Position numbers and translations under genes: made by a program. From contig JALMLS010000621.1 of NCBI GenBank assembly GCA_038496445.1, forward strand, positions 62,001 through 126,000: a DNA stretch of 64,000 bases. Reading direction: 5' to 3'. The first letter of the stretch is position 1; every line of letters starts with the position of its first letter. This DNA comes from Trichosphaerium sp. ATCC 40318. Its lineage: Eukaryota > Protista > Tubulinea. A model generated the notes under the pieces. That model was given only the letters and a program-made list of their open reading frames with translations, made no database searches and had not been told where the DNA came from. Below are positions 1 to 64,000 of the stretch, in pieces.

Positions 1-2
1 AT

Positions 3-24300: not shown

Positions 24301-27300
24301 TATTCGAAACTAGTCCGTACAACAGCAGCACAAGAGGCTGGATCAGTAATCATATCTCCATCAAAGTCGAACATACTGGCTGTACCATCTGAATCTAAAG
24401 TGTCATCGCCTTGATTAAAAGCAGTGACTTGTTGACCACTTTGTACAGCTGCACAGATAATGTAATCGACGTTAGGTTGAACGCCATCGAATGTATCGAA
24501 TATGTAGGTTCCCATGCTATCTGTTGTTGCTCGTGAAACTTCAATTCCACCTTGAGTTAGTACTACTGTTGATCCAATAATTGGATTATCACCCATGTCT
24601 ATTTGGAAAGGTCGTTACACATCAATCAACCCATTATGGTCGTACCTTGGAGACCATTTCTGTTGTTATCGAGAAACAATGAGTCACCAATTGAAACGAT
24701 TTGTATATTAGCGAAACCAAAGTCATGAGATGTATCAGAAACACCAAGAGCAGGTGAGGTCTGTAAAAGAGTTATTAACAAAAACATATTGAAGTAATTC
24801 ATTTTGTGACGTGCGATAGAAATACATGAAGCATCATCAAATATCATATCTCCATCAAAGTCGAAAAACGCAGTATTGAAAATACCATCAGAGTCATTAT
24901 CATCACTTGCTCCTTGATTCGGAGAAGCGACTTCTTCTCCTGATCTGATTGGAGAACACAGAGTGTAAGCTGTGTTTGGAAGCACACCATCAGCGGTTGT
25001 GAATGAGTAGATACCCATCGAATCTGTCATTGTACGAACAAGTTCAGTACCATCACTTCGCAGTAATACAACTGGATGAGATGTAATAGGCATATCTGAA
25101 GGTTCTAGAAATAATGATTAGTGGAGGTAGGTTAATGGAAAATTGTTGTACCTTGAATGCCGTTTCTGTTGACATCAAAGAATACAAAGTCTCCGATTGT
25201 TACTTCTGGAGTAACAAGACCAAAGTCAAATGTGTCAAGTGTCATCCCAGGTGATGGTGATACCTGAAAGCAATGAGTTAGATATTCGGTTGTAAAGTGA
25301 AGGTTATTGTACAATGTTAACACATGAAGCTGGATCGTTTGAACCATCCATGTTAAAGTCAAAAGTACGAGAATCACCATCTGAATCGAGATCATCTGAT
25401 CCAACATTCAACATTGCTGAAGTTTCCGTAGATACTAATTCTACACATATAGTGTACATAGTGTCGGGTTGTATGCCATCAGATGTGGTGAATGTGGCAA
25501 TACCTCCACTTGATGTGGTGGTACGTGTGACTTCAGTGACACCATCAGGAAGGGTTATCACAACAATTCTGGATGGTATTGGAGAGTCACCAGCATCTTG
25601 ACGTCCATCGTTGTTGACATCAGAGAATACGAATGACTCGATTGTGATTGGTTGGGTAACAAATCCAAAATCAATGTCAGTATTTGATAACCCAGCACTT
25701 GGTGATGTCTAGTACAAATTAGTGCGCTGAAAATTAAGTGAGAAGAGATAGCGTACAAAAGAAGCACAAGAAGCTCTCTCAAGGGTACTGTCAGGTGGAG
25801 ATGTGAGATCAATGGTAGTTATAGATCCGTCAGAGTCAATGGTATTGTCTCCACCTTGACTTGGGGCCGTAGGATCTTGAGTTGGGAGTAGTTCAGTACA
25901 AATGATATAATCCGTATCAGGCATTACACCATCAGAGGTTTGGAAATTATAAAACCCGTTCATATCAGTGTTGGTCATAGTGATCACACCACCAGAGCTA
26001 TCCAATAAAACTACAGGATACATAGAAACTGGTACATCTCCAATGTCTTGAACACATTGTAAGTTTAAATGAAAAGGAAAAATATTGGGTACCTTGTAAG
26101 CCATCTCCGTTTGCATCGAAGAATACAAAGTCACCAAGGAACTGGTCCAAAGTCACAATACCAAAATCGATAGTATCATCAACAATGCCTGGCGTTCCAG
26201 AAGTCTACGTTGTGTTAGTTAAGAAACTAGTTACTACTCAATGCACGTACAACATCAGCGCACAAAGCAGCATCAAGGACACCGTCACCATCAAAGTCTA
26301 TGATTTGTACAAGTCCATCTGAATCAATGGTATCCAATCCTGCGTTTGGATCTGCTCCACGCTCGTTTGCGAGAATAGGAACACATACAGTGTACTGCAC
26401 ATTGGGTAGAACACCATCAAAAGTGTCAAAAGAGTATGCACCAGAGCTGTCAGTAAATTCTCGTCTTACTTCCAACCCATCGCTTACTCTGTACAAGACA
26501 ACAAGTCGTGATGGAACTCCAATATCGCCACCGTCTATTTTGATTGTATTTTTAGTTTGAAATTCACTATTTATAGAATAGCGTTGTTTCGTACCTTGTA
26601 AGTTGTCTTGGTTAACATCAAAAAATATGCGATCGCCAATCGCTACTGTTTGAGGTACAAATCCAAAATCAAAAGTCAAGTCTGATCCAGTCGAAGGCGA
26701 CATCTAAAAAACACAAGAGTGTTAGAGAAACAAATAAAGAACGAGAAAAACAAGTGTTTGATTTTTTTTTCAATAAATCGTACCAGAATAGCGCAAGAAG
26801 CGCTGTCAGGGACCAAGTCTCCATCGAAATCAAAGGTAGATACCATACCATCAGAGTCAACAGTATCATCTCCACCTTGGTTATCAATTGTGGGCTGTTC
26901 CCCGTTTCGAGTTTCAACACAAATTGTGTATTGTGTGTCTCGCATCAATCCATCGTTCGAGTCAAAGATGAATGTGCCCAATAGATCACTTGTTTTTCGC
27001 GAGACTTCAACATTGTTGAACACTAGAACAACATCTACACCAGAGATTGGTGTGTCTCCACCATCTTAAACAACAATTTTAGATTTGTAATCATTTAGTC
27101 AGTACAACGTTTACCTTGGATACCGTCTCGATTGTTGTCAAGGAAGATGGAATCACCGATTGTAATGAGTATGTTAGTGAAACCAAAGTCATGAGATGTA
27201 TCAGAAACACCAAGATCAGGTGAGGTCTGTTGAAGAGTTGTTAACAAAAACATATTGAAGTAATTCATTTTGTAACATACGAAAGGAATACATGAAGCAT

Positions 27301-30300
27301 CATCAAATATCATATCTCCATCAAAGTCGAAAAATGAAATATTCAAAATACCGTCAGAGTCATTGTCATCACTTGCTCCTTGATTCGGAGGAGCAACTTC
27401 TTCTCCTGATCTGATTGGAGAACATAGAATGTACGCTGTGTTTGGCAGAACACCATCAGCAGTTGTGAATGAGTAGATACCCATCGAATCTGTCATTGTA
27501 CGAACAATCTCAGTTCCATCACTTCGCAGTAATACAACTGGATAAGATGCGATGCCAGGATCAGAAGGGTCTAGAAATCATGTTAAGAAGTCTTCAGAAC
27601 ATAGATATAGGTACCCTTAATTCCGTTCGTGTTCACGTCAGAAAAGACAAGATCGCCAATGACAATCTCAGGTGTCACCACACCAAAGTCAATGGTGTCG
27701 TCAGTAACGCCAGGCATAGGCGATGTCTAAATCAGATTAATAAAATAAGACCCAAAGGTAAAAAGGCGTACAAAATCAACACATGAAGCTGGATCGTTTG
27801 AACCATCCATGTTAAAGTCAAAAGTACGAGAATCACCATCAGAGTCAATAGTGTCGTCAGCACCAACATTTATGGTGGTTGAAGATTCTGTGATCAACAG
27901 TTCGACACACATGATGTATTGTGTCGTTTGGAGAAGACCGTCTGCTGTACCGAACGTTGCCATACCCATACTGTCAGTCATACGTCGTACAATCTCTGTT
28001 CCATCAGGAAGTAGTATGACCACATTCCGTCCAGGAAGAGGAGAATCCATGGCATCTTGAATACCATTTTCATTGACGGCGTCAGAAAACACAGTAGGGG
28101 TTATGGTAATTGTTCGAGATATGAAACCAAAATCATAGTTCATGTTAGACATGCCAGTACTAGGTGAAACCTAAAAAATAAAATAATCAACTAAAGTGCT
28201 TTTAAGTAAGAAAAAAAAATAGGTCTTACAAGGTCAATGCAAGATGCGCGATCTAGCATCATGTTTGGTGGATTCGATAAATCCAATGTACGTATAACAC
28301 CATCAGAGTCGATGGTATCATCAGCACCTTGGTTTGCGATCGAAGGATCTTGGTCAGTTGGAAGTGGAGTGCAAATGGTGTATTGAGTATCTGGTGCTAT
28401 TCCCTCACTTGTATCGAACGTGTAAATACCGTTCATGTCAGTCGTCTTTCTCAATATTTCCATCCCTGCACTAGAGTATAGTATCACGTCGTAATTGGCG
28501 AGAGGCATATCAACAGCATCTTGGTAAAGGAGTTATAAAAGGGAACGTTCAATGCATTTTAAAAAAACTTGAGGCTATCAGTTAAGCTGTACCTTGAATG
28601 CCATTACCGTTCGCATCAAAAAATATAAAGTCTCCAATAAACTGTGTTGGTGTGGTGATACCCAAATCAACATCTGGATTAGTATCACCAAGCGCTGGAC
28701 TCGTCTACAAGGATATAAGAAAAATAATCAAATAAAAAAGAAAAAAAACAAAAAAAGACATACGACTGAAGCACATGAGGCTGGTTCTGCAACAGAGTCA
28801 CCATCAAAATCAAAAGAGCTTGGTACTCCATCAGAATCATCAGTTGGATCCATGCCAACACCACTCGGAGAAGCCAGTTCGCCGACCAACAATGGAACAC
28901 AGATAATATAATTCGTGTTTGGTACAATGTTGTCATCAATTGTATTGAATTCATAAGATCCTGTAATCCTCGAAGTCGTTGTAGATACGAGACTTCTGTC
29001 GTTTGCATTTAAAATCACAACCTGTCTCATCTGTACCCCAACATCTCCAGGATCTACCAAACAGAAATAAGCAAATGCAATTCTTTAAACATAAGACAAA
29101 CAAAATACAAACCTTGAAGGCCGTCTTCGTTGTTATCAAAGAAAACAAAGTCACCAATTGATATTGTTTGCGGAATAAATCCAAAGTCAAGCGATAGATC
29201 AGAACTACCGAGGCTTGGAGTCGTCTATTTAGGATGATTAGAAACTAGTAAATAACCAATTTTCGAAGAAAAAAAAAACATACAACAATAGTGCAAGAGG
29301 CAGGTTCATCGATCATGTCTCCATTGATGTCGAAAGCAGCAAGGACACCATCTGAATCAGCTGTATCATCCATGCCAATATCATTAAATGTGGGTTGCTC
29401 TCCAGCCCTGATTGAAACACAAATGATGTAGTCTGCGTTTGGTTGAATGCCATCGAATGTATTAAAGTCGTAATTGCCATTCACATCTGTGATGGTTCTC
29501 GCAACGACATTATCTGCCATGCTGATTATAACGACATCAGTGCCTTGAATGGCGACATCCATGGCATCTAATCAGAAATTAAACAAATAAAGAAAACCAA
29601 GTTTATCTTCAACGCTACCTTGAAGACCATCTCTATTGCTATCAAGGAACACATAGTTTCCAATTGTAACAATTTCAATATTTACAAATCCAAAATCAGT
29701 TGTGAAGTCGGTGATACCCAAACCAGCTGATATCTAAAGGAATTGGTGTAAGTCACTAAATAATTGTAAAAAACATACAAGGTTGGCACATGATGCATCA
29801 TCAAGTACACCATTGCCATCAAAATCAAAGAAATCCGCTTGAAGAGATCCATCAGAGTCCTGAGCGTCACTTGGACCTTGGTTGGCTTGTGTTGGTTCTT
29901 CACCAAATCGTATCGCAACACAAATGGTGTAAGGAGTGTTTGGCATGACACCATCAGCCAGGTTGAATGAGTACAGTCCATCAATATCTGACACGGTACG
30001 TGCAAGCTCAGTTCCGTCACTACGGAAGATGACGACCGTCTGTCCTTGAATTGGAGTATCGGATCCTGAGAAAAATAAGAAAAGATGTGTATGGTGGAAT
30101 GATGTTTACCTTGCTGGATACCATCAGAATTCACATCAAAGAAGATGAAGTCACCAACATCTTGTCTTGCGATACCAAAGTCAGTTGTATCATGTGTCAT
30201 AGCGGGTCCAGGAGCAGTCTAAATACATCAACAATCAACAAACGTGTGATATAAACGTACAAGTGATGCACAGGAAGCTGGTTCCAGGGTGGCATCTTGA

Positions 30301-33300
30301 GGAACTGTAAAATCATATGATGACAATAATCCATCAGAGTCACGAGCATCGCTCGGTCCTTGATTTGCATTTGATGGAAGTTCACTTGGAAGCAATAAGA
30401 CACATATCTCATACATCTCGTTCGCAATGACACCAGTATCTGTGTCGAATGTGAAAATACCAGAACCGTCAGTATCGGTTCTCGCTACTTCCATCCCACC
30501 AAACAACAATACAACCTGTCTCATCATGACAGGTGTGTCGAACATATCTTGGATTGCAGCACCGTCTTCATCGAAAAATACAAATCCTTCAATGACACTT
30601 GGTTGTTCTACAAATCCGAAATCGTAGTTCAAGTTGTTAACTCCAGTGAATGGCGATGTCTAAAAAAAGAAAAAAAAAAGTAAACAATGAGCTGTTAAAC
30701 AAATGAATACGTACAAAATCAAGACATGAAGCCCTATCAGGCATGCCATCAGGTGGTATGGATACATCAACCATACGTAGAACACCATCGGAATCAATTG
30801 TCCTGTCTGAACCCACTGAAGTTGCTGCTGGGTTGTGTACATCTGGGATCAATGTACAGATAGTGTACAATGTGCTGGGATCCAATCCATCGATTGTACC
30901 AAACATGTAAAATCCAAGGTTGTTCGAATTTGTACTGCTAACACGCACACTCATACTGTCAAATAACACTACAGGATTCATGGCTACAGGTGTATCTCCA
31001 CCATCTAAAAAGTTATAAGCGCCAATTAACCTTGTGTTTGACACGAGGTACCTTGTAGGCCATCTCTGTTTACGTCAGTGAAAATAAAGTCACCAATAAA
31101 TTGATCTGGGGTGATAAGACCAAAATCAATGTCCAAGTTTGTTGTACCAAGAACAGGGCTCGTCTAATTAAAAGTTTAGTGTTAGCGAATGAAGAAAAAA
31201 CAACTTAAAACGCACAAAAGATGCACAACTGGCGTCTTCTTGAACTGTGTCCATGTTAAAATCAAAGGATAATAAACTACCATCAGAATCAAGCATGTCA
31301 TCAGAACCTTGGTTCGCTGTTGTTGGTAGCTCTCCCAATACGATTTGTACACATATGGTATAAAGTGTGCTTGGAGTAATGCCATCAAAAGTGTCAAATG
31401 TAAACAATCCAGATGAGTCTGTTGTTGTTCTAGCAATCTCAAGGCCGCTACCGCCAGTCTCAAATATAACGACAGTGCGAGTTTGAACAGGAACATCACC
31501 GGAATCTAAACGTTCATAAGTGACAAAAACAAAAAAGAACATTCAATCAAAAATTGCATTTTTTAATTGTACCTTGAATGCCATCGTTATTGATGTCAAA
31601 GAAGACTCTATCACCCATCGTGATGGTTTGAGCAACAAATCCAAAATCTATTGTTAGATCGGACTCGCCTAAAAGCGGTGCAGTCTAGGAAGTACATTAG
31701 ATCAACCGAGTATATTATAAAGTGAGCACTTACGACACTAGCGCACGATGCAGGTCTGAGCAACATATCATTATCAAAGTCATATGAGTCAATGAACCCA
31801 TCTGAATCACGCATGTCTGAGGGACCTTGATTGGCAGCGGTGGGTTCTTCATCAGCTCTAATCGTAGTGCAAATCACATATGGCATGCTAGCTTCAACAC
31901 CAGACATTGTGTTAAATAAGTACAGCCCATCCGAGTCTGTTATAGTGCGGCTGACTTCCATTCCACCTTGTATTAACACCACAGTGGCACCAATGATTGG
32001 AACATCAGGCATATCTAAGCATGTTATTTTTGGTTGATAACAATAATTATTTTTCTGTTTACCTTGAATACCGTCTCTGTTGGTATCGAAAAACACATAA
32101 TCACCGATTTCGATGTCTAATGTCAACAAACCGAAATCGATCGTAATATCAGTCTGACCTGGTATTGGTGATCTCTGTGGGTATTGTTAGAACTGAGTGA
32201 AAACTATTAACATACAATTAATGTGCAAGATGCTGGATCACCCATCATGTCTCCATCAAAATCAAACATGGAGTCACTGCCATCAGAGTCGATGGTGGAA
32301 TCGATACCCGCAGTTGTTGAAGTTGAAGCTTCGTTTGTGATGAGTTGTACACAAACAAGATAATCTGTTGCTGGTTCTATTAAAGGTGTTGCAAATGAGT
32401 ATGCACCGGATACATCAGTTGTTGTTCTTGATACTTCAGTGCCATCAGGTAGAAGTACAACAACAGTTCTCATTGAAACAGGAATATCTGTGCCATCTTG
32501 GAGACCGTCTGCGTTCTCATCAAAAAACACGTAATTGCCAATAGCTACTGGCATTATGATAAATCCAAATCCGATTGTTCTATCGTCAATACCCAGAGCA
32601 GGAGACGTCTAAGCAATATGAGTTAACACCATACCAATTTTGATAATTAATAGCACGTACAATACCAACACATGAAGCCGCTTCAGTCATGCCATTAGGA
32701 GGTATTGTAAAGTCAGCCATACTCAACACGCCATCAGAGTCGATGTTATCGTCGACACCAGCGTTTGTCGCAGTTGGCTCATCGAACATGCGTATGCGAA
32801 CACAAATGGTGTATGTAGTGTCAGGCAGTACGCCATCCATTGTATCGAAAGTAAAGATACCCATTGGATCTGAAGACGTGATGGATACTCTCATACCATT
32901 CATGTCCAACAAAACAATATCTGCACCGTTAATTGGTGTGTCACCCATATCTAAATCAAGAAAAATGTGAGAACAATCATTTTAATCACGTGTTTTGGTT
33001 TTTTTGGTATTACCGAATATGCCGTTTCTATTTTCGTCCAAAAACACTTGATCTCCAAGAGCTTGTTGAGGTCGAACAATACCGAAATCAAGTGTGAGGT
33101 CACTGATACCAACAGGAGGAGTAAGAATGTCGCGACAAGATGCGAAATCAAATGTAGAATCTCCATCAAAGTCGTAACTGCCTTGAGTACCATCAGAATC
33201 GATGGATCTATCAGAGCCAACTCTTGTTGGTGATAGAATCTCGCCGACAAGGACAGGTATGCACACAGAGTATTGTGTTAGAGGGGTAAGAGCCACATTA

Positions 33301-36300
33301 TCCAGTAGGTACATGCCTAACATGTTTGTGGTAGATCTTGTTATTTCTGTACTGGATTGATCAATAATAACAACAATACGTCCAGGAACAGGTTCGTCAC
33401 CAGCATCTGTTTTTAAAACCATCTTAGCAAATCACAAATATTTATTTAGGGTATTAAATATTTTAGTTATCCTAGGCCCCTTAGTAGCGTACCTTGTATG
33501 CCATTATTGTTAACATCAAGGAACACAAAATCACCAATGAGAACCGGCGGCGCTAAAGTACATTGTTAGTGCTTTACATTTAAACAAAAGAAGAAATCTT
33601 ACGCGTTGGAGCGAGCGTTGTTGGTGGTTCTGTTGTTGGTGGTGCCGTTGTTGGTGGTTCGGTTGTTGGTGGCTCTGTAGTTGGTGGTGCTGTTGTTGGT
33701 GGTTCCGTTGTTGGCGGTTCTGTTGTTGGTGGTTCTGTAGTTGGTGGTTCCGTTGTTGGTGGTTCCGTTGTTGGTGGTTCCGTTGTTGGCGGCTCTGTGG
33801 TTGGTGGTGCCGTTGTTGGTGGTTCCGTTGTTGGTGGTTCCGTAGTAGGTGGTTCCGTTGTTGGTGGCGCCGTTGTTGGTGGCTCTGTAGTTGGTGGTTC
33901 CGTTGTTGGTGGTTCGGTTGTTGGTGGTGCTGTAGTTGGTGGCAACGTAGGAGCTTCTGTAGTTGGTGGTTCTGTAGTTGGAGGTTCCGTAGTAGGTGGT
34001 TCCGTTGTTGGTGGCGCCGTTGTTGGTGGCTCTGTAGTTGGTGGTTCGGTTGTTGGTGGTTCCGTTGTTGGTGGTGCTGTAGTTGGTGGTTCCGTAGGAG
34101 CTTCTGTTGTTGGTGGCTCTGTAGTTGGTGGTTCCGTTGTTGGAGGTTCTGTCGTTGGAGGTGCCGTAGTTGGTGGCCCTGTAGGAACCATAGTTGTTGG
34201 TGGTTCTGTAGTTGGTGGTTCTGTCGTTGGAGGCTCTGTGGTTGGTGGTTCTGTAGTTGGAGGCTCCGTTGTTGGTGGTTCTGTACTTGGTGGTTCCGTT
34301 GTTGGTGGTGCCGTTGTTGGTGGTCTTGTAGGAACCATAGTTGTTGGTGGCGCTGTAGTTGGTGGCAACGTAGGAGCTTCTGTTGTTGGTGGCTCTGTAG
34401 TTGGTGGTTCCGTTGTAGGTGGTATTGGCTCGTGACATATACCTAGATCAATGTTGTGGTTCCTGTAGCCTGTGGAAGGGATAGAAATAGTGAATACTGC
34501 ATTGGAACCTGAACGCGTATAATCGTTGTCGTGTCTGTCACTTGTTCCAGCACCAGTAGTTGGTATTGTTACTATCATCAAGGGCATCTGTAAGGACTCT
34601 TGTGATAATGGAACAGTAATGGTCCAACTTGTGGCCCCAAAAAGGGGGGAAGAAGCACCAGCGGCGTAATACCTAAATATCAAATTAAGTTTTTTGTTCA
34701 GGTTGTTTTTTTTCTGTATAAAAGCTTACCCTCCGTTCGCCGTTACTACGGTTTCTGGTCTGCTCGAGGGGCCTCTATCTACCATCAGTCCGACATTATC
34801 TATTCCAGGCTCGCTTGGATCTTGAATGCCATCACAGTCAACATCTAGCCAAACATAGTTTCCGATTTGAATTGGTGGAACTAAGCAAAGAGGTTCTATT
34901 TCGCCAAGTCCTGTAGCTTTACCAAAGAATGAAGGATTGTCATCACTATCGTATAGTATATTCGCTAAAACTTTCTGACCAACAGCTGTATTGTGATTTG
35001 TAATACCAGCAGTATTAGCACTCGTTTCACCATTGACAGGATCTATTTGAGTGAAGATCATTTCACCAGTACCTGAAAAACAAAACGCCGTCAATACAAA
35101 CGATAACAACAAAAATTAAAGTTAAAACTTGAGTTCGCTTACCTATCACTGTTGTTACAGTGCCTACAAACGTTTCTTGATGAAAAGCTTGACCTAATAT
35201 AGGGGCATTTATGTATACATCATCAGAAAAGAACTCTGCGTCAACCATTTCGTTATCAAGGCTTGAATCTATGTAAGCAGTATAACCACCGCATGTCGCA
35301 GCTCCTACTGCTCCAGTTTCTTTTGTATAAGTTCCTTAAATTAAAAAAATGAGACACACGTGATTAATTACAAAAAAGGAAGGTGTTTGTACCGGATCCA
35401 TCATTTGAGAAACATATTGCATCACCACCAACATCGCCTGCCATATCAGATCCACGGGCGCCTGTTTGACTGCCGAATCTATCTGAAAACGCTAATATCA
35501 TGTTGTGTTGCTCATCAAATGCAATACCAGATAGGATAGGCTGTGGGTGCGCAACTATAAAAGAATAAACAAAAAAGTAACTGAAAAATGATTACGGCTG
35601 ATGTTCTGTACGTACACTCTGAAAAGCAGTTTGGAAGCATGGAAATATCATCAAGCCATGCATTCCACTGTATCCATTCTTGTTCTATGGTATTTGGACT
35701 GCAGTCGAGTGCAGGTTGGCGATCAAAATCCATCCCTTCTTCTACTATCTATGAGAGAAAACGTTTAGTTTTAGTAGACAGGAAACAAAATAATTAATAA
35801 TTCCTGCGTACATTCGTCCAAGAGAATGCCACCGTACCAAAGTCGTCTGCTGGCGCGCTGTATACGTAATACATCAAGTCAGATCTCATTTGAGTTGATT
35901 GAGCGGTACAAACTATACCAATGTACAGTATGCCCTCGTGGTACCTTAAAAAGCACATGTGAGAAGAAACGATACAAAGTTTTTGTTAAAAACTACGAAA
36001 CTTCGCTTGTAAATAGCTGCGTTAAAAAAAAGCCATAGTAAGTACGCACGTGACACCGAATGGGCGAAAATTTAAGTTTAACTCTCCGCCTGGCGTAGCT
36101 GCGTCTACAACACAGGAAGCTATTCATTGTAAGCATAGCAAATAAATGTTTAAAAATAACAACAAAACAAACAACAATTAAGCCACGTGATAAAAAAGCT
36201 ACCTGGATTGGTGGGTATATCTTCAGATGAAATGTCACTCATTGTAATATCTGCTGGCATTTCCGCCACATCTAAGTAGTTTGTAAATAAACAAGAAGGA

Positions 36301-37666
36301 AGTAAAAATAGGTGGGAAAAAAAAACAACAAGCATACCAATATCAATGCGAACAACAGTTCGAGAAAATAGATTGACAACATAGACGAATTCTTCATCAT
36401 CGCTAATATCCATACCACCGAAACCATGCTTTCCAACAAGAGGAATTGCTAATGCATCAGTGTCCAAATCATTGCTATGCAACTGAGAATTTAGCAAATC
36501 TGTTGCTGGTGACCCGAGAGCTTCCATATCAATTGTTTGCACAATATTACAGCCCATCGAGGCTGTATCGAACAAACGATATATAGTCGATGGCGTTTGT
36601 CCGGTAATATAGCCAACGTGTGCTTTTTGGTAAGAACCTGAAACACATTAATACCAAACTTACCAACTTAGCTCTCTATCTACTATATAAAAAGCCGAAA
36701 GTGTGGACGTACTGGCAAATATTTGAGTAGTCATAGGAGAGTATGCAATACCCCATATAGGGCCTGTTTCAGGTGCGTTGCATACTGTTGTTGGAGCAAC
36801 AGAAGCAGCCGCATTATTAAAAAACGTGGGATCGCTTACAATATTTGTACCGACTGTATTTGCTTTTGTTACTAAAGTAGCTTCCTGAATGGATTGATCA
36901 CCTGTTAAATTATTTGTTACAAAATTGTCACGTGATGAAGGGAAAAAAAAAAAAAAACAAAGAAAATAGTTTCAAAAGCCTATTTATTTGTGAACTCTGA
37001 CGCGATGTTTTCAGAAAACGTACCTCCAACAAAGCAAGTGGATAGGATATCAAACGATAGGCGTACTCCGGGCATTATATCGCCATTACAGAAATCGTGA
37101 ATAATAGATAAAGGAATATCTGCTGCAGTTTCAGGGCCTGTAAATACATACGTCGCAGCAATCACTGCGCCCCCATCAGCATTTATTGAAGAAGATGTCA
37201 CGAATTGTGTCGGGGCATTGACTACCTCTAATCTCAAAGGAATCACTGATATCGGAGTTAGTTGAACTATTTTATAAAAACGTTTGGGTTTTTTTCCATC
37301 TGCTTTAAAAAAACCATGTTAAAAGCAACACTTACTATCAGCTACAGTTAAAGTAAAAGTTCCATCTGCTATTGTTGTATCAGTAGCTACCATCGCATTT
37401 GCGTCGTCATAAGCTTCTATGACAACGTCGATAATTCCTAGTTGAAAGGGTTTAGTGACTTTAAACTGTTTGAATGGTCACATGATTGCCAAACAAAATT
37501 ATTTGTATTAGACCTGACTTGGTTCTTAACAGCGCGTACCAGGTTCTAAAGCATCCCTTCTACCATCGAAATCAAAGTCACGGAATACAGTACCGCTTAT
37601 ATCAGCAACTGAAAGGCTGAATAGCGACAATAAAGCCATCACAAACAGTGAAAAAGTATAACACAT
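8567..37666 (-). CDS. Giant secreted SdrD-B-like repeat protein (adhesin/cell-coat-like), paralog A; ~100 introns, est. ~7,500 aa
   Basis: ATG at 37666: MCYTFSLFVMALLSLFSLSVA (signal peptide), then DISGTVFRDFDFDGRRDALEPG. This is followed by a head domain, a PPTTE linker and ~49 repeats of IGDxVFxDxNxDGxQD...VVL...TTDxxGxYxF...YxIC...NQGxDDxxDSDG...FDFDGD...ASC...DFGF split by GT-AG introns. The C-terminus has GDPHFVGFNGQKFDF, and the last exon ends ...SLDGFVE* (stop 8569-8567). Confidence 0.88.
9820..33552 (-). repeat. Tandem array of ~49 SdrD-B-like domains (~480 bp each incl. introns), with 5-unit higher-order period (~2.4 kb)
   Basis: Manual count of recurring exon units. Near-identical units recur every ~2.4 kb, e.g. 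ORFs 18059-18445, 20392-20841, 22752-23264 and 16588-16884, 19020-19283, 21404-21670. Confidence 0.85.
33604..34433 (-). repeat. Coding 15-bp minisatellite, (PPTTE/PPTTA)n mucin-like linker, ~55 units (gene A)
   Basis: ORF 33580-34683 translation; ggtggttc(t/c)gt(a/t)gtt units on the + strand. Confidence 0.9.
34870..37100 (-). other. N-terminal head domain of gene A (bacterial-type, probable beta-propeller-like)
   Basis: Spliced motifs: GPIWGIAYS, VGKHGFGGMDISDDEEFVYVVNLFSR, RPFG...YHEGILYIGIVCTA, WNAW, HPQPILSGIAFD...LAFSDRFG, HQETFVG, FGKATGLGEIEPLC, leading into IQIGNYVWLDVDCDGIQDPSEPG. Confidence 0.65.
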
Positions 37667-41912: not shown

Positions 41913-41929
41913 AGGAAAAACAATACATC

Positions 41930-49209: not shown

Positions 49210-49589
49210 TGTGTAATGTAAATGAGGTGAGAAATACTGGCTAAAAAAACTCCAAATTTCGTTAAGTCACGAAAGGGAAAAAAAAATACAAGCTTCAACT
49301 GGAAGTGTACAAAGAGCTGACCGATCGGAAGTTGCAACTTCCAAGCCCAACCGAAGTTATTCAGCGATTAACGCGTTTTCACTTTTTGAAATGAAGCAAA
49401 ACAAACTTTGATGCAAAGAACAACAAAGTGCGAAACTGCACAAAGAGAAATAACGACAATAACTTTAAAAATAAAAGAGCCACTGTTATTTATAACAGTA
49501 GCATTTTACAATGTAGTCAGGATCTTAATAGAGCTTATTAGGAGGCTCTTAGTTCTATTTTTTTGAAGATTTTGATAGATATTCAAAAT

Positions 49590-51119: not shown

Positions 51120-51201
51120 TGTTGATGATAATAAGTGTTCAACTAACTGGTGCTTATTTGGACGATACCGTTTTGATTACTTAACTGTTCAGTTTAAGTG
51201 T
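51120..51201. promoter_or_regulatory. Putative compact bidirectional promoter
   Basis: Only 82 bp separate the inferred divergent start codons at 51119 (-) and 51202 (+). Confidence 0.45.
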
Positions 51202-53421
51202 ATGCAATTTTTTGGCGCACAGAGGGCATTGTACATGGTCGTAAAGCCGTTATGACTAATTGCAGTTTGTATCTCAGTGAAAACGCAAAGAATTTATCAA
51301 AAGAACAAGCAAACGCCCGTCGTCTCATCCATGGTTCGGTAGAACACAATTTGCGGGAATTTTTGTATTTAGATGGCACCTCGGAGCTACGATTATGGCT
51401 ATGCAGTTCTCTTAGCGTAATTAAGGTTGTTCTCAATACCGTTAACGATTTTTAACCCTCTACTAGCTGAAGGACAGGCATAAGGTGGATATAGTCAAAG
51501 GGGCATTACTCGACGCGTCAGACGCTTCCCTGGAACAAATATTGCTGGTAAAGTGACACTTTACACCTAAACCACAAGGACGCCATACTGACGTTGGCAT
51601 AGAAAATGTGCGGCGTTATGGAGGATAAGATTGGACGAGTGCTTGCCACTGAACCAAGATTATTTCAAAAATACTTTAAGGGCGACAAGGCGAGAATGTT
51701 AAAGTGGTTTGACTGGTTTTACGTCGATGACGACCAAAGTAAGAGAAATCAGCCTTTCCAGTATGGTGCTGATGCAATTGAAAAATTCGGGTTTGCGCAT
51801 CGAGATGAGAGCTGGGACGACACCATGAGATGGGATTCTCATAGACCTATAACACCTGTATCTGCTGCGCGGCAGCGACAACTATTTATGCATTTGAACG
51901 TCTATAAAACTGTCAAAAAACTCATCAAATGTACGTGCCCCTTTGGTTTATCACGTGACCTGAATGAGAAATAGCAAACAAAAAAACTAGAAGACGAGAA
52001 AAAAATGTCTTTTTTTTTTTTGCCTTTTTGTTTCTTCTTAGCTTTTCCATCGCCACTAACCCTTTGTGTGGTTACAGATGATAGATTTTGGGAATCAGAA
52101 GATTTCTTAAACACTGTAAGGGATGGGAAGTTCTTATCTGTGCTGGACAAGATGTACTTCGTACAGTACGCTCAATCCAACGGTTTCTGTTCTTTTTTGC
52201 TTATCTGTGCGTTTTAGAATAATGCTTAGTGAATACCGTCGGAATGACCGCTCTTATATTGGTCGCAAAGTAGATCAATTATTTGATGATTATATCGCAT
52301 CTTGCGATGTTGGTGAAGTGCTATCTGATTTACTAATGACGCTCACTGTAGAACAATCTGTTCATATTGTAAAGCGCTTACATAGACTCCATGATAACCC
52401 TAGAACAGACGTACGTTAAACATCCCACTATCAGAAAACTGTTGTGTCCATATTCTATGAAACGATCTTTTTCAAGTTAACTAAATGCAGTATCCCAATT
52501 TTCTTTTTTTTACGAAGTTTTTCTCATGCAGTTATAGGTAATAACTCGAATCCTTGGTTGTATTCTTGGACGTGAAAACAATGATAGTATATCTGAGAAG
52601 TGGGATAAATTGTTACTATTTAACGCGCTAACACCTCAACACCGTCATAAAGTCATTTATGCCATTGTGCGTATTTTCTTGTTAAGTTTTCAAACCATGT
52701 GAACTTCAATACAATCAACAACCAATCAAAACATTTTGTGTCAACAAATCAGCACTAGTAATTCTCGTATTACAAGTTGTGGCATAAATAGCGCTTTGAG
52801 AGTTATTTTTATTTTACAAACAATCACGTGATTGTGTGACTTTTTTTTGCTTATTTTATTTTTACCTAGTTTCATGATGATTCACAAACACCGGTGTATA
52901 ACAAGTTTAATACTCTGCATGGTGATCCAAAGGTTGATAGTTGTCAACATTACGCTTTAAAAAAAGAGGTGTTGTCCGTCACTAGTTCGAAACAATCTCA
53001 TGGTGGTGATTATAACGCTCTCAAGTTTTTTTTGATTGAGTCTGTAATTCTAGAATACCGGCTTACAAAATTCGCTACAGACAAGTCTTCTTATGATGAT
53101 ATTCTTAAAGAGAATAGTTTAATTGTTACGCCGTATTATCAAGAAGCAGTCAGTACACACAAAAAAAAGAGACGTAAAAAAGATAAAGGAAAGAAAAAAA
53201 AACACAAAAGATGGTCGGGTGATGACGGGTCATCTGATAGAGATACTAAAACATTTGATGGATGGCATTTAAATTTTATAGATGAGAATATTGGAAAGCG
53301 TAATTCTACCTCAAGAAAAAGAGAAATAGGCGCTACACGTCCTCGAGTTGTTGGGATTTCTGAGATGCCTTGTATTTTAGCAACTTATTTTTTTAATGTA
53401 CAGTTTTTGTATAAACAATAA
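51202..53421 (+). CDS. Conserved hypothetical protein (resembles an uncharacterized family seen in plants), Lys-rich C-terminal tract
   Basis: Spliceable exons with SELRLWLCSSLS, LKWFDWF...YGADAIEKFGFAHRDESWDDTMRW...LNVYKTVKKLI, FWESEDFLNTVRDGKFLSVLD and KKKRRKKDKGKKKKHKR. The start codon is inferred via a 35-bp intron at 51231-51265. Confidence 0.65.
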
Positions 53422-53969
53422 AAGACACGAACTATCTTTTTTTCAAACAAAAAAATGTCACCCCCTTTTAATTCCTTTGGATCCTATGTATGAGTGGTAC
53501 AATATGTGTCCGGAAAATTCGGTAGTCCTTTTTTCTATACATAGTAACGTAAGATAACTTTTCCGACAAAAATGAAAAAAAAAAAATCTACAAAAAGATT
53601 TTCGGAGTTGTCTTGCATTTATTTCAAGTATTTTTCTGCGCAAAGTGCTTTAATAGATATATGTGATGTATAAAGATATATGTTCGCAAATTGTACACAA
53701 TATTAGGGCTGGATAGTTTGTGAAAAAAACACTAAAGAAAGAAGAACTAGAGTTTTTTTTTTTGTGAATGTATTTTTTGACCATTTGCAGTAGCCTTTGT
53801 GTAAATTTACTCGGCCGGAGTTGAAGATATGTGTGAATACGTATGTACTTGTATTATATCTTTTACATGTCCTTATTACAAGTTTATTCTTTTTTCAGTT
53901 TGTGTTGCTGTTACCCTTTTTGTGTGTACGTTTTCAAATTTAATTAAATCTCTACAGTTAACCACTCAG

Positions 53970-56900
53970 ATGTTTCAAAGCGAAGCTCCTATGCTTACAC
54001 TGTTAGCAACGCTGTTAATTCTGTGTAGAGTTAACGCTCAAATAAGCGGTATAGTATACCGTGACTATGATTTTGACGGCAGAAGAGACGCTCTAGAGCC
54101 AGGTATGTAAGGTAACAATAGGCTAATTAACTTTCCGGAGGTATCTCTATGGTGGATCTTGACCTTTTCGACGGCAACAATATGAATGTTGGATCTGCTA
54201 CAACCGATTCCAACGGCGCCTACAGCATTTCAGTTGTAGCTGGTAAACCCGTTTTGTCACGTGACACCAAATATTTTTAACTTTGGTTAGGAGTGTACAG
54301 ACTAGAAGTATCGAACAGTCCAGCACTGTTCACCCATTCCTCTTCAACGAACAATGACGGAGGACCTGTTTTTTCAACAACACATGTATTTTCGGCTCCT
54401 ACAACTAGTGCTGATATTCCTCTATCTGCACCTCATGACTATTGTGTTGGTGATATTGTAGATGGAGTCAGAGCACAATTTGATGTCGTCACCACATGCT
54501 TTGTAGCAGGTTAGTTGAACTGTTCGCTTCTCGCAAAAAGTTCTAACAATTACTGGGTAGGTGATCAAACTACTGCGGAGTCAACGATAGTTTTAAAACC
54601 AAACACTGCCGGCACAATGGACTTTTTTGATTTTGCAGCCGGTTCAGAAGATTTTACAACGGATGTATGTACAGATGTACAGACAGGACCTGTTTGGGGG
54701 GTTGCCTATTCACGACTTACAAGGCAGTTATATCTAAGTAAGTCGCCACCATGCAGAATGATTATTTGGGCTTATACTAAATAGGTTCGTTTCAAAAGAC
54801 GCATGCTGGGTATACTGTTGGTCAGACACCATCCACCATTTATAGGCTTGACACTAGAGCCGGAGTAACATGTAACATTGTACAGAACATTGACATGGCA
54901 GCGTTTGGATTCCCGGCTACTGACTTGGCGCCGAACCAATTGCATAATGTCGCAGACTATTCAATTGATTCAATTGCTATACCGCTTATTGGCAAGCATG
55001 GGTTCGGGGCTATGGATATAAGTGATATCGAAGACTTCCTTTACGTTGTAAACTTATTTTCCAGGACAGTTATTCGTATTGGCCTTGGTACGCAGCCTCA
55101 CGGTTTTTTTTTTGGTGTTCTCAGCTTTCAAACAAAAACCCAAAGTCCGTATCTTGTAAATTTTAAATCACACTCTTTTTAGAAGTCTCTGCCATGCCTA
55201 GACTTATCGAAGCGAGTGATATCATCGCAAAAGCTATACCGGATCCAGGTACAAACAAAACCCCACATGTTAGCTCGCGCACCTTGATAAACACGTTTTA
55301 GGTGCATCATGTGTATTTGATATGGCAACGCCTGTTAACGTATTGAACTTGAATGTTCGCCCTTACGCCATTAAGTGCGTCTTTTATTTTTTTTTACTAA
55401 CAACAATACCTTATAAACGCTCTAAAAGCACTACAAACCATGTTTGTTTGCTACCTGAAAACATCAAGTTTTGTTCAAAAACAAAACATTTTGGCTAACA
55501 AAAGACCGTATTTAGATACAATGAGGGTGTCTTATACCTCGGTATGGTTTGTACTGCCGAAACAACTAATTTGCGCTCTGACTTGAGGTACTACGTGTAC
55601 ACTACTCCAGCAGACGACTTTGGTGCGCCTGGGCCAGTAACTTGGACCAAGGTAAATTTTAATCTTTTCTCTTCATTTTGAAGTTCGCTAAGCGTTTTAA
55701 CATTAGATTGTGGACGAAGGAATGGACTACGATCGTCAACCTGCTCTGCAATGTGGTTCCTCAGGTATCCCAGCCCAGGAGCATATTCAATGGAATGCAT
55801 GGACGGAAACTTTTTTAGCTCCTGAATGTTTCGAAGAAGGTACTGTATCTCTCCTTTTGGCTATTAACACCTAGCTTTTTTTTTAATTTTATCACGTGAC
55901 TTTTTTTTTTTTCAAATTTTTTCTCAACCTATGATTAGTGGCACATCCGCAACCTATACTAGCAGGCATTGAGTTTGATGAAACAGGGAACATGATTCTG
56001 GGATTTCAAGATAGATTTGGAAGTCAAGCAGGAGATTATAGTGTCGACGTAGTTGGCGATATTGGCGGGGACGCACTCTGTTTTTCATACGACAGTGGCA
56101 ATGGTACTACACACATTTATTAGATCTGTTTGAATAATTTTTACCGTTGACGCGTTGTGTAGACATTTGGATAAGAGAAAGTGGACTTGGTGGTCCCGCA
56201 ACTTGCGGTAGTAACACAGCAAATATAGCAAGTGGTCTTGGACCTGATGGCGGCAGTGAATTTTTCTACGGTGACGTTTACACTGATTCTAATGGCGCCG
56301 GCTTTCATCAAGAAACTTTTCAAGGTGGCTTGGTAACTGTTCTTGGTGGGTATCTTTTTCACAATTTTATTATTTTTCTTTTTTCAAGGCATCACCAATA
56401 TTGGTTGATTTTTACTCTTTGATTTCTTCTTTCGTATTTTATTATTATTTACAATGAGTTTGGTATACATACATTATTACGACTTCTAAATTAAATCATA
56501 TGCTGAGCCTTTTTTTTTTTCAATAATTATTTTCCAATAAAATCTGGTCTGATTGAGTATAGGAACTGGCGAGCTTATAATGCCAGCGATGGACCCTCTT
56601 GATGGAAATTCCGGTGCTTTCTCAGGTGGTATTACAAATCAGCAGTCCAGGTATTTTTATACATGGTTGACTAGCTTGGATTAGACAGTTACTCTGTATC
56701 TGAAAAATAATTTTATTTACGTTTTAACTACAACACATCTACTCTGTATAGCCAGAATTTAATTTTTCAGAGTAAACGTATAGGATCAATCAAAAACCAA
56801 CCTTTATTTTTATCGAAATACAGAGTAAACTTACAGAATCAATCAGTATTTTCTCTTAATATTTTTGACAAAATTCAGGGATGGACAAAAAGTACTTTCC

Positions 56901-59900
56901 TATCTATTATATACAGGCGGCAATACTGGTATTTTTTTTGCGAAATCTACAGGTGTGGGGGAGGTAGAACCAATATGTGATCCTCCACCATCACAAATCG
57001 GCAACTACATTTGGATTGACACTGATTGTGATGGTATTCAAGATCCAAACGAGTCAGGTCCTGATGGCGTCATTGTTACGTTAAATCGTAATGACGGTAG
57101 CCCATTAGTAACTTCAGTTACTTCGAATGGCGGGTGCGAACACTCTAAATATATTATTAAATATGTCTCTTACTTTACACCAGCTACTTTGGATTGACAT
57201 CTCCTGATCCAATATTTTCGCCTGTCAGTTGGACAATTACCGTGGATATGACACAAGCAAACTTACAAATGCCTGACGTTTCTAATTTTGTGTCAGCATT
57301 GAACGCTGGAACAAATGATCGTCATGATAACGATTTTGTATTAGGTGTCAATGCTGTAGCGTCCGTAGATGTTTTAGTACCTACAACAGGGTACAGAAAT
57401 CACAACATTGATCTTGGGGTTTGTCATGGAATACCACCAACGACGTTGCCACCAACGACATCGCCACCAACTACAGAACCACCGACAACCGAGCCACCAA
57501 CAACATCGCCACCGACTACAGAACCACCAACAACCGAACCACCAACTACTGCGCCGCCAACAACTGAGCCACCAACTACTATGCCCCCAACCACAGAACC
57601 ACCGACAACTATGGCACCAACACGTGCGTCTAAAAATAAAAATCAATATTGATTTTTTATCAATTAAACAAAATACTTAGATCCGCCTGTACTCATTGGT
57701 GATTATGTGTTCCTTGATGTTAACAATAATGGCATACAAGGTACGCTACTTTAGGTCCAAGACAACTAAAATATTAATAGATGCTGGTGATGAACCTATT
57801 CCTGGACGTATCGTTGTTATTATTGATCTGTTAGGTGTAGAAATTGAAAGAACTACAACAGATATGTCTGGCTTGTACTATCTGGATGATAATGCTCTTG
57901 ATCCTCTTACTGAATACTCCGTGTGCATACCTGTTCTTGCTGGCGAGATTTTATCACCAACAAGAGTTGGCTCTGATATATCCATAGACTCTGATGGTAC
58001 TCAAGGCAGCTACGACTTTGATGGCGATTCTACATCTGATTTCGCATCTTGTCGCGACATTCGCACTCCTGCCTTCAAAATCAGTGACTTCACACTTGAT
58101 TTCGGTATTGTTCGACCTCAACAAGCTCTTGGAGATCAAGTATTTTTGGACGAAAATAGAAACGGCATATTCGGTACATGCAATAAAACCAAAACACGTG
58201 ATTAAAAGGATTGTTCTCACATTTTTCTTGATTTAGATATGGGTGACACACCAATTAACGGTGCAGATATTGTTTTGTTGGACATGAATGGTATGAGAGT
58301 AGCCATCACGTCTTCAGATCCAATGGGTATCTTTACTTTCGATACAATGGATGGCGTACTGCCTGACACCTCATACACCATTTGTGTTCGCATACGCATG
58401 TTCGATGAGCCAACTGCGATAAACGCTGGTGTAGACGATAACATCGACTCTGATGGCGTGTTGAGTATGGCTGACTTTACAACACCTCCTAATGGCATGA
58501 CTGAACCGGCTTCATGTGTTGGTATTGTACGTGCTATTAAACATCAACTTTTCACTCACAAAAGTTGTTTAGATGTCTCCTGCTCTGGGTATTGACAATC
58601 GAACAATCGGATTTGGATTTATCATCATGCCAGTGGCTATTGGCAATTACGTGTTTTTTGATGTGAACGCAGACGGTCTCCAAGATGGCACAGATATTCC
58701 TGTTTCAATGAGAACTGTTGTCGTACTTCTACCTGGTGGCACTGAAGTATCAAGAACAACAACTGATATATCCGGTGCATACTCATTTGCAACACCTTTA
58801 ATAGAACCAGCAACAGATTATCTTGTTTGTGTACAACTCATCACAAACGAAGCTTCAACTTCAACAACTGCGGGTATCGATTCCACCATCGACTCTGATG
58901 GCAGTGACTCCATGTTTGATTTTGATGGAGACATGATGGGTGATCCAGCATCTTGCACATTAATTGTACGTTAATAGTTCATTTTCACTCAGTTCTAACA
59001 ATACCCACAGAGATCACCAATACCAGGCCAGACTGATATTACGATCGATTTCGGTTTGTTGACATTAGACATCGAACTCGGTGATTATGTGTTTTTCGAT
59101 ACCAACAGAGATGGTATTCAAGGTAAACAGAAAAATAATTATTGTTATCAAAACAAAATAACATGTGCTTAGATATGACTGATGTTCCAATCATTGGTGC
59201 CACTGTGGTGTTAATACAGGGTGGACTGGAAGTCAACCGCACTATAACAGACTCGGACGGGCTGTACTTATTTAACACAATGTCTGGTGTTGAAGCTAGC
59301 ATGCCATATGTGATTTGCACTACGATTAGAGCTGATGAAGAACCCACCACTGCCAATCAAGGTCCCTCGGATATGCGTGATTCAGATGGATTCATTGACT
59401 CATATGACTTTGATAATGACATGGTGCTCAGACCTGCATCGTGCGCTAGTGTCGTAAGCTGTTTTATAAAACTGACTTTATTTGTATTAAGTATTTTGTC
59501 TTAGACTGCACCGTTATTAGACGAGTCCGATCTAACAATAGATTTTGGATTTGTTGCTCAAACCATCACGATGGGTGATAGAGTCTTCTTTGACATCAAT
59601 AACGATGGCATTCAAGGTACAATTAAAAATGCAATTTTGATTGAATGTTCTTTTTTATTTTTGTCACTTATGAACGTTTAGATTCCGGTGATGTTCCTGT
59701 TCAAACTCGCACTGTCGTTATATTTGAGACTGGCGGTAGCGGCCTTGAGATTGCTAGAACAACTACAGACTCATCTGGATTGTTTACATTCGACACTTTT
59801 GATGGCATTAGTCCAAGCACACTTTATACCATATGTGTACAAATCGTATTGGGAGAGCTACCAACAACAGCGAACCAAGGTTCTGATGACATGATTGATT

Positions 59901-62900
59901 CTGATGGTAGTTTATCATCCTTTGATTTTAACATGGACACAGTTCAAGAAGACGCCAGTTGTGTATCTGTTGTGCGTTGTTTTGAATTCCGCTCTTTATC
60001 CAATGCTGATTTTTTGTTCAAATTAGATGAGTCCTGTTCTTGGTACAACAAACTTGGACATTGATTTTGGTCTTATCACCCCAGATCAATTTATTGGTGA
60101 CTTTATTTTCACTGACGTAAACAGAGATGGTCTTCAAGGTATGTCTTGGAGCAAACCCCAACTTTCATTGATGTTTGTAACGTTGTTATCTTTAGATGGT
60201 GGAGACACACCTATAGCCATGAATCCTGTAGTGTTATTTGACAGTATGAGTGCGCGTGTTAGCAGTACAAATTCGAACAACCTTGGATTTTACATGTTTG
60301 GTACAATCGATGGATTGGATCCCAGCACATTGTACACTATCTGTACATTGATCCCAGATGTACACAACCCAGCAACAACTTCAGTGGGTTCAGACGGGAC
60401 AATTGATTCCGATGGTGTTCTACGTATGGTTGATGTATCCATACCACCTGATGGCATGCCTGATAGGGCTTCATGTCTTGATTTTGTACGTATTCGTTTA
60501 TTTGTCATTTCTCGTTCATAACAGCTCATCCCCTTTTTTTAGACATCGCCATTCACTGGAGTTAACAACTTGAACTACGATTTCGGATTTGTAGAACAAC
60601 CAAGTGTCATTGAAGGATTTGTATTTTTCGATGAAGACGGTGCTGCAATCCAAGATATGTTTGACACACCTGTCATGATGAGACAGGTTGTATTGTTGTT
60701 TGGTGGGATGGAAGTAGCGAGAACCGATACTGACGGTTCTGGTATTTTCACATTCGACACAGATACTGGTGTCATTGCGAACGAGATGTACGAGATATGT
60801 GTCTTATTGCTTCCAAGCGAACTTCCATCAAATGCAAATCAAGGACCGAGCGATGCTCGTGACTCTGATGGATTATTGTCATCATATGATTTTACAGTTC
60901 CTCAAGATGCCACCCTGGAACCAGCTTCCTGTGCATCACTCGTACGTTTGTAGCACACGTTTGTTGATTGTTGATGTATTTAGACTGCTCCTGGACCCGC
61001 CATGACACATGATACAACTGACTTTGGTATCGCAAGACAAGATGTTGGTGACTTCATCTTCTTTGATGTGAATTCTGATGGTATCCAGCAAGGTAAACAT
61101 CATTCCACCATACACATCTTTTCTTATTTTTCTCAGGATCCGATACTCCAATTCAAGGACAGACGGTCGTCATCTTCCGTAGTGACGGAACTGAGCTTGC
61201 ACGTACCGTGTCAGATATTGACGGACTGTACTCATTCAACCTGGCTGATGGTGTCATGCCAAACACGCCTTACACCATTTGTGTTGCGATACGATTTGGT
61301 GAAGAACCAACACAAGCCAACCAAGGTCCAAGTGACGCTCAGGACTCTGATGGATCTCTTCAAGCGGATTTCTTTGATTTTGATGGCAATGGTGTACTTG
61401 ATGATGCATCATGTGCCAACCTTGTACGAGTTTCTTACAGTTATAAATCTAAAATGAACTACCCTCCTGTAGATGTCAGCTGATTTGGGTATCACCGACT
61501 TCACAACTGATTTTGGATTTGTAAATATTGAAATTGTTACGATTGGAAACTTTGTGTTCCTTGATAGCAATAGAGATGGTCTTCAAGGTAACGTTGAAGA
61601 TAAACTTGGTTTTCTTTATTTGTTTAATTTCTGATTAGATGCCATGGATGTCGCTATTCAAGGTGCTGATGTTGTTATAATCGATATGGCAGATGCTGTA
61701 GTTGCGAGAACCATCACAGATGTGAATGGCAATTACGACTTTAATACATTCGATGGCATTCAACCAAACGCAGACTACATCATTTGTGTTTCAATCAGGG
61801 CTGGAGAGCAACCCACATTGAATGATATTGGCATGGATGATACAAGTGACTCAGATGGTGTCCTTGATGCTTTCGACTTTGATGGAGACATGATCGATGA
61901 ACCTGCCTCTTGCAATCCTGTTGTAAGTTGTTTTTTCGATATGAAACACGTTATTTACTTGTTTCTAATCCATCCTAAATAGACAACTCCAAGCCTCAGT
62001 AGTTCTGATCTATCATTTGACTTTGGATTTATTCCACAAACAATATCAATTGGTGACTTTGTTTTCTTTGATAACAACGAAGACGGCCTTCAAGGTTTGT
62101 ATTTTGTTTGTCTTATGTTTAAACAATATTGCATTTGCTTATTTCTGTTTGGTAGATCCTGGAGATGTTGGGGTACAGATGAGACAGGTTGTTATTTTAA
62201 ATACAAACGACAGAAGTCTCGTATCTACAACGACTTCGAGGATTACAGGATCTTATGAATTCAATACAATTGATGACAACATTGTACCAAACACGAATTA
62301 CATTATCTGTGTTCCATTGTTGGTCGGCGAACTAGCTTCTCCAAGTGGTGCTGGAATGGATCCAATTGATGATTCTAATGGAGTGCCAAGTTCATTTGAT
62401 TTTGATGGTGACTCTGTTGCAGAACCAGCCTCATGTGCTTCAGTCGTATGTCATTTTTTGGTTTTGTTTTGATTACTTTTCTTACAACTTTGTAGACAAG
62501 TCCAGCGCTTGGTGATACTGACATAACCATTGATTTGGGTATCACCACACCAACGCAGTTTGTTGGTAACTTTATATTTTTTGATGCGAACGGTAATGGC
62601 ATTCAAGGTACAACTTAACTGAAAGCCTTTAGTTTCATTCAAATTCATTGTACGCCCCTTTATAACTCCTTTACCAAGATGCTGTTGATATGCCTCTCGC
62701 CAACTACGACGTGATACTATACTCTAGTGCAGGGATGGAAATATTGAGAAAGACAACTGACATGAACGGTATTTACACGTTCGATACAAGTGAGGGAATA
62801 GCACCAGATACTCAATACACCATTTGCACTCCACTTCCAACTGACCAAGATCCTTCAACTGCAAACCAAGGTGCTGATGATACCATTGACTCTGATGGTG

Positions 62901-64000
62901 TTATACGTACATTGGATTTATCGAATCCACCAGACATGATGCTAGATCGTGCATCTTGCATTGACCTTGTACGACCTATTTTTTTCTTACTTAAAAGCAC
63001 TTTAGTTGATTATTTTATTTTTTAGGTTTCACCTAGTACTGGCATGTCTAACATGAACTATGACTTTGGTTTTATATCTCGAACTATTACCATAACCCCT
63101 AATGTGTTTTCTGATGCCGTCAATGAAAATGGTATTCAAGATGCCATGGATTCTCCTCTTCCTGGACGGAATGTGGTCATACTACTTCCTGATGGAACAG
63201 AGATTGTACGACGTATGACTGACAGTATGGGCATGGCAACGTTCGGTACAGCAGACGGTCTTCTCCAAACAACGCAATACATCATGTGTGTCGAACTGTT
63301 GATCACAGAATCTTCAACCACCATAAATGTTGGTGCTGACGACACTATCGATTCTGATGGTGATTCTCGTACTTTTGACTTTAACATGGATGGTTCAAAC
63401 GATCCTGCTTCATGTGTTGATTTTGTACGTCTTTTTACCTTTTGGTCTTATTTTATTAATCTGATTTAGACATCGCCTATGCCTGGCGTTACTGACGACA
63501 CCATTGACTTTGGCGTGGTGACACCTGAGATTGTCATTGGCGATCTTGTCTTTTCTGACGTGAACACGAACGGAATTAAGGGTACCTGTCTTAGCTCAAC
63601 TTTTGCTTGCAAAAATAACACCTCTGCACTTTAGATCCTTCTGATCCTGGCATTGCATCTCATCCAGTTGTGTTACTTAGATCTGATGGCACTGAACTTG
63701 TTCGTACAATGACAGATTCAATGGGTATCTACTCATTCACAACTGCTGATGGTCTTCTCCCAAATACAGCTTACACTCTATGTTCTCCAATCATACCAAA
63801 TGAAGAAGTCGCTTCTCCAAATCAAGGAGCAAGTGATGATAATGACTCTGATGGTATTTTCAATACTGCGTTTTTCGATTTTGATGGAGACATGATATTT
63901 GATGATGCTTCATGTATTTCCATCGTACGCCACACCAAACGAATAACTTGGGTATTCCTACTAACAACTCTTCAACAGACATCACCTGATCTTGGTGTTA
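53970..64000 (+). CDS. Giant secreted SdrD-B-like repeat protein, paralog B; 3'-truncated by window
   Basis: MFQSEAPMLTLLATLLILCRVNA (signal peptide), then QISGIVYRDYDFDGRRDALEPG. Head is colinear with gene A's, followed by a short PPTTE linker and 13 repeats matching repeats 1-13 of gene A. Confidence 0.88.
57431..57622 (+). repeat. (PPTTE)n mucin-like linker of gene B, ~12 units
   Basis: ORF 57194-57652: IPPTTLPPTTSPPTTEPPTTE...MAPT. Confidence 0.9.
57680..64000 (+). repeat. Right arm of long inverted repeat (matches ~33552-27207 in reverse); 13 SdrD-B-like units
   Basis: ORF 60570-60953 equals ORF 30228-30632 over its length, ORF 63044-63469 is near-identical to 27727-28152, and several introns are shared almost verbatim. 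Confidence 0.9.

Follow-up and report, generated by a model that had tools for sequence, protein, structure and literature searches.

Palindromes whose arms are kept alike by gene conversion, and whose spacers undergo inversion, have been described (PMC8327919), and in the human inversion HsInv0241 the exchange of the differing first exons of AQP12A and AQP12B has little effect (PMC3961182). In yeast, head-stalk chimeras of the FLO genes can alter adhesion (PMC3512402). A model of interlocus conversion at HMA4 holds that short introns stay homogenised and that only long introns escape (bioRxiv 10.1101/2025.10.29.685298). Shufflons are high-frequency reversible switches that typically operate through a site-specific recombinase (PMC11868660).

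We analysed a 64,000-nucleotide window (the whole stretch of DNA under study) from the protist Trichosphaerium sp. ATCC 40318, which carries two paralogous genes, A and B. In agreement with an earlier sequence-only reading, self-BLAST of the window showed that A (minus strand) and B (plus strand) are divergently oriented and share an inverted repeat, in which positions 27206-33792 match 63999-57434 with 91.0% identity over 6,655 columns and 37 gap openings. The human inversions HsInv0241 (AQP12A/AQP12B) and HsInv0389 (FLNA-EMD) and the primate X palindromes likewise have inverted arms, maintained by conversion, around a spacer with unique genes (PMC3961182, PMC8327919), and HsInv0241 is the closest arrangement to this locus. 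In the human and primate systems, however, inversion has been shown and the palindrome arms differ by less than 0.2%, whereas here the arms are 91% alike, patchy and composed almost wholly of gene body, and inversion is hypothetical. The yeast FLO adhesins resemble the genes studied here in having a head, a repeat stalk and an end domain, and recombination between paralogs across the repeats can swap their stalks; on the other hand, they are subtelomeric lectins with Ser/Thr repeats whose heads recombine too (PMC3512402). The genes described here have stalks of folded SdrD-B modules, each interrupted by about two introns, form an inverted pair at one locus and show no head exchange.

Gene A occupies 8567..37666 on the minus strand. 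Its spliced model, built by script and curated by hand, has 99 exons and encodes 7,906 amino acids without an internal stop, and it extends 18.6 kb to the left of the region covered by the earlier reading. All introns of the model are of the GT/GC-AG type, with GC-AG donors at 24814 and 19806, and two of them correspond to spliced joints in RNA run X3, which represents spliced RNA from this strain or one close to it. The median intron in the window is 52 nt, as befits an intron-rich eukaryote. The protein begins with a signal-peptide-like start, followed by the head (34430..37666, about 768 aa), a Pro-Thr linker of 276 aa in which a 15-nt unit recurs about 55 times (33603..34423), a stalk of about 49 SdrD-B modules and an end domain of 226 aa that begins at a GDPH motif (8567..9380). 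Modules A1-A13 form the left arm of the inverted repeat (27206..33552) and are homogenised with those of B, and a super-repeat of five modules is present in about three copies further along the stalk (16455..23422, period 2,396 nt). The Pfam family SdrD_B (PF17210) scored above its gathering threshold on five single exons from the stalk and head. The tested exons of the C-terminal domain had no Pfam match, and an atlas search with one of its exons returned nothing above 0.82. A word search with a stalk exon of 171 aa yielded no homologs, a negative that the length limit of the search renders uninformative. Queries in the database searches and fold predictions were single exons or bacterial homologs, and the joined spliced models were compared by script only. 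The spliced model contains no transmembrane segment or hydrophobic anchor after the signal peptide. Introns interrupt the stalk modules (8567-33552) at two constant positions, and the exact absence of one or both of them from several modules points to precise loss or gain of introns. Judging from domain homology, the protein most likely acts as an extended rod on which a propeller head is held off the cell, with a presumed role in adhesion.

Gene B, on the plus strand, has its start at 53970 and runs through 13 modules to the edge of the window. Its head (53970..57437, about 759 aa) has one additional intron relative to head A (56651-56878), and its Pro-Thr linker (57434..57623) spans 65 aa. 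The linkers thus differ fourfold in length (276 aa in A, 65 aa in B), which is a possible further source of variation. Modules B1-B13 form the right arm of the inverted repeat (57681..64000), which is cut by the window edge; the arms are therefore at least 6.3 kb long, and the distal part of B lies beyond the window. Each gene has its own start, signal peptide and open frame. Both are intact and probably both are expressed, which is shown in part.

The heads differ to a far greater extent than the stalks. Head motifs quoted in the earlier reading are present, and the two heads are 54.7% identical in protein (411/752). Their synonymous sites are saturated (Sd/S 0.76) at a dN of 0.37, the longest identical DNA stretch is 18 nt, and the paired head introns are at chance level (identity 0.26-0.56). 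On these substitution counts the divergence of the heads is old and under constraint. The diversification of the heads proposed earlier corresponds to this old divergence, and positive selection is not demonstrable from two sequences. A profile built on one head exon of each gene detected 118 relatives, and the top named ones are bacterial, namely giant proteins annotated as SdrD B-like domain-containing or similarly, from Caldilineaceae, Caldilinea, Bacteroidia and Rudanella. In local blastp, the full-length head aligned with bacterial proteins at 28-33% identity over about 750-800 residues (E 1e-62 to 1e-83); these relatives are giant surface proteins of Chloroflexota and Bacteroidota. The predicted fold of a bacterial head homolog (pLDDT 89) matches SdrD B domains and beta-propellers. 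Taking the fold from this bacterial homolog only, the head most likely consists of an SdrD-B-like domain, a beta-propeller and a second SdrD-B domain, and a bacterial origin of the head is likely. The bacterial proteins of Caldilineaceae and Rudanella (for example MFN8488963.1 and WP_185155628.1) are homologous to the entire 750-aa head, and SdrD-B modules are common to both groups. In contrast to them, genes A and B are eukaryotic, have about 100 introns, place one head on about 49 modules, and include the Pro-Thr linker and the GDPH end domain. Several of the bacterial proteins have multiple heads each; the top homolog (Caldilineaceae, 4,919 aa) carries the head module five times within a single chain. 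A literature search for SdrD proteins in amoebae returned nothing on point.

The arms of the inverted repeat are not uniformly alike. Near-identity had been placed directly after the linker, and the shared arm indeed starts at the exon that follows it (33552 / 57681), but the second stalk exon reaches only about 82% identity over roughly its first 300 nt. The inner edge is therefore graded, and identity of at least 97% is found only from near 33100/58080. Sliding windows along the arms alternate between 96-100% and 70-85% identity, and no identical run exceeds 220 nt. Paired stalk exons of A and B are 95.6% identical (dS 0.10, dN 0.03; core dS 0.03-0.05), the proteins encoded by the visible stalks share 94.6% identity, and each B module is closest to the A module at the same position, whereas modules within A are typically 52% alike. 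The introns follow a different course. The claim that identity often includes them applies to 11 of the 22 internal pairs, which are 0.83-1.00 identical; three others are at 0.68-0.76 and eight at 0.60 or below, against a core identity of 0.42 ± 0.09 for unrelated introns. These eight diverged introns, one of which reflects a 45-nt indel, sit between exons that are 96-99% identical. For example, the intron at 30714/60486 has an identity of 0.60 and is flanked by exons with 98.3% and 99.0%. At a neutral divergence of 10%, the probability of chance-level divergence is about 6e-7 per intron. No donors for the eight introns were found elsewhere in the window.

Further signatures point to exchange in small pieces. 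Differences between the stalk exons are unevenly spread (chi-square 127, 19 df, p 4e-18). Among six copies of one module, incompatible site pairs rise from 8% at distances under 50 nt to 43% at distances over 150 nt, with permutation p values for mosaicism down to <0.0002, and B13 is itself a mosaic that is A13-like at its 5' end and A17-like at its 3' end. In the super-repeat of A, most paired exons are 89-98% alike (one is 73%) and most introns are unrelated. Two introns of gene A that lie 7.2 kb apart (25312 and 18067) are identical, and the intervening copies are not. Among the diverged introns, 4/25 share at least 10 nt at the 5' end, compared to 0.1% expected by chance. The excess of exon differences within 10 nt of diverged introns is weak (7.1% vs 2.9%, p 0.07), which weighs against conversion. 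The low dS next to chance-level introns, the uneven exon differences and the mosaic modules support the previous suggestion that ongoing recombination homogenises the stalks.

This patchwork of old heads and introns among near-identical exons leads us to conclude that the locus probably goes back to an old inverted duplication, the copies of which short-tract gene conversion has kept similar. The inverted arms with a unique spacer, the patchwork divergence and the mosaic copies are those of inverted paralogs under interlocus gene conversion. According to this explanation, an old inverted duplication of a gene for a giant secreted SdrD-B-repeat protein would have produced the two genes. Ordinary homology-driven DNA conversion would then copy short tracts between in-register stalk exons, and the same process would act between repeated modules inside one gene; for both, the sequence signatures are strong. 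The tracts would require near-perfect homology and halt at dense differences, so that the heads, the linkers and some introns of 45-57 nt would have fallen below the homology threshold and drifted freely, with other introns carried along. Selection for two different heads may contribute to keeping them apart. A toy conversion model with a near-perfect seed and a stop at dense differences left 50-nt introns unrelated at a synonymous divergence of 0.04-0.06; its settings were arbitrary, all introns escaped and the co-homogenised half was not reproduced, and it thus speaks to feasibility only. The escape of introns as short as 45-57 nt is the odd part of the pattern. As at HMA4, exons are trapped in concerted evolution and unconstrained parts escape, but it is the long introns that escape there (bioRxiv 10.1101/2025.10.29.685298) and introns of 40-57 nt that do so here, and this difference counts against the explanation that we prefer. 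A literature search for exon-only homogenisation returned nothing on point, and no related loci were found in metagenome contigs.

The homology that would sustain short-tract conversion would also permit a rare crossover between the arms, inverting the middle and exchanging the distal stalks in frame as a by-product that needs no dedicated switch. The inverted segment would be 33553..57680, 24.1 kb or more, and contains the heads, linkers and 5' regions of the two genes together with the unique genes of the spacer. The presence of SCAR, Rac and MRT4 in this middle segment, reported earlier, was borne out. The SCAR/WAVE-like gene (44737..46361, plus strand) was recognised by sequence features and presumably belongs to the SCAR/WAVE family; the exon tested had no Pfam match. 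It adjoins the complete Rac GTPase gene (47103..48251, plus strand), which is nested, in antisense orientation, within an intron of the MRT4-like gene (46515..49209, minus strand; Pfam RL10P_insert, E 1e-13 on one exon). A D123/ATP-grasp-like gene follows at 49590..51119 on the minus strand (weak Pfam D123 match, E 0.002). On the other side, we take an intron-rich gene at about 42950-44200 (minus strand), with the motif VIFPEGT near 43550, to be a probable acyltransferase. Broken frames at 41192-41912 (plus strand), with an F-box-like start followed by MORN/YwqK-type repeats, had no Pfam match and are probably a decayed gene. Beyond the C-terminal end of A, we assume that minus-strand exons at about 2450-5620 belong to a DH-PH Rho guanine-nucleotide exchange factor, which they resemble, with a proline-rich tail; a small gene at about 6130-6600 (minus strand) is presumably YjbQ-like, and positions 1-581 (plus strand) presumably hold the end of a protein kinase-like gene.

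The geometry of the proposed flip, a lossless inversion of about 24 kb with exchange of heads and stalks, proved correct. All 22 complete paired stalk exons are equal in length in A and B, so that chimeras arising by crossover would be in frame. Because both 5' ends travel with their heads, a flip would switch neither head on or off, and because the visible stalks are about 95% identical in protein, a swap would matter only if the distal part of B, beyond the window, differs from that of A. It is conceivable, though unlikely, that inversion recurs without a program and has a functional effect: the arms would then be an active flip site that works without a recombinase, both orientations would segregate among cells or strains, and the heads would gain a different stalk length and end domain. 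This reading is compatible with the old duplication and short-tract conversion, and both can hold. It draws on arms of at least 6.3 kb with identical runs of up to 220 nt, on the preserved frame of the chimeras and on the conserved unique genes of the spacer, which would make inversion a harmless outcome; inverted repeats in humans do cause recurrent inversions (PMC3961182, PMC8327919). However, the arms are only 91% alike and are interrupted every few hundred bases by unrelated introns, whereas human breakpoints fall in regions of very high identity (PMC3961182), and the similarity of the visible stalk proteins implies that the effect may be slight.

RNA could in principle have served as the template instead, if reverse-transcribed mRNA of one copy converted the exons of the other and left its introns untouched. 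Such a process would produce homogenised exons with many unrelated short introns, as seen in both the arms and the super-repeat, and might account for the modules in which one or both standard introns are missing. On the other hand, the 11 introns that are 83-100% identical would require a template that had not been spliced, no stalk intron among the 22 pairs is absent from just one copy, and identity leaks into the 5' ends of introns. Since the co-homogenised introns and this leakage favour a DNA template over spliced RNA, we regard RNA-templated conversion as very unlikely.

The high exon identity and the exact register of the modules would also follow if the stalk had recently been duplicated onto a second head that was already old, or if the assembly were collapsed or wrongly joined. 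Neither process, however, yields both the roughly 9% of arm columns that differ and the eight unrelated introns, and RNA contigs contain both A-like and B-type letters. We therefore consider these origins highly improbable; assembly collapse and a single recent duplication, taken as such, were rejected on the diverged introns and the arm differences. The RNA letters come from run X3, in which one A-like piece carries new variants and others show the B letter at seven sites. In one piece, 31929, 31961 and 31968 have the B letter and 31951 has the A letter. The X3 contigs have a depth of 2-5 (3 for this mosaic piece) and may include a third paralog, which is one account of the mosaic besides shared polymorphism and a private change; we treat the mosaic as weak evidence. 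RNA contig 3 seems to change from A to B across 57 identical bases; since the assembly may have joined two pieces there, we did not count it as a chimera. Runs X1 and X2, which derive from one sample, covered about a quarter of the head-A words (34400-37700) and nothing on the stalk (27600-33560). Possible causes are 5' bias, filtering, a different stalk in that strain or a transcript confined to the head; in the last case, translation that continues into the intron at 33602 would end at a stop after 8 codons.

With respect to bacterial shufflons and phase-variable inversions, as defined in PMC11868660, the likeness is that a lossless inversion could swap variable and constant parts of a protein. 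The shufflon-like reading given earlier was not sustained by the comparison. We found no recombinase-like open reading frame or Pfam match in the spacer (37.7-53.9 kb), although a spliced or distant enzyme would escape this search, and no dyad site common to both inner edges. Upstream of A and B, nothing is shared beyond 23-nt chance matches. In place of short crossover sites, the homology consists of kilobases of coding sequence, and in place of a single expression site with silent cassettes there are two genes complete at their 5' ends, with spliced stalk pieces of both the A-like and the B-like kind in RNA run X3. Three features that define shufflons were thus not found here, and the locus does not belong among them. 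A programmed head switch, in which a dedicated system would flip the cassette often and so change a surface adhesin, gains some appeal from the lossless, reversible geometry and from variable heads on near-constant stalks, but with both heads starting inside the segment and a gradient rather than a sharp site as boundary, in addition to the missing enzyme and dyad, its probability is minimal.

The combination of a bacterial-type propeller head with an SdrD-B stalk in an intron-rich eukaryote makes these unusual genes. Islands of 45-57 nt that escape between exons of 96-99% identity limit the tract length and the homology needs of conversion in this protist, and the locus is in this respect a clear natural record of the reach of gene conversion. 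If the arms do act as a flip site, they would offer a eukaryote a reversible way to tune a giant surface protein, and the finding of both orientations together with different distal stalks would make the locus a case of reversible adhesin recombination in a eukaryote.
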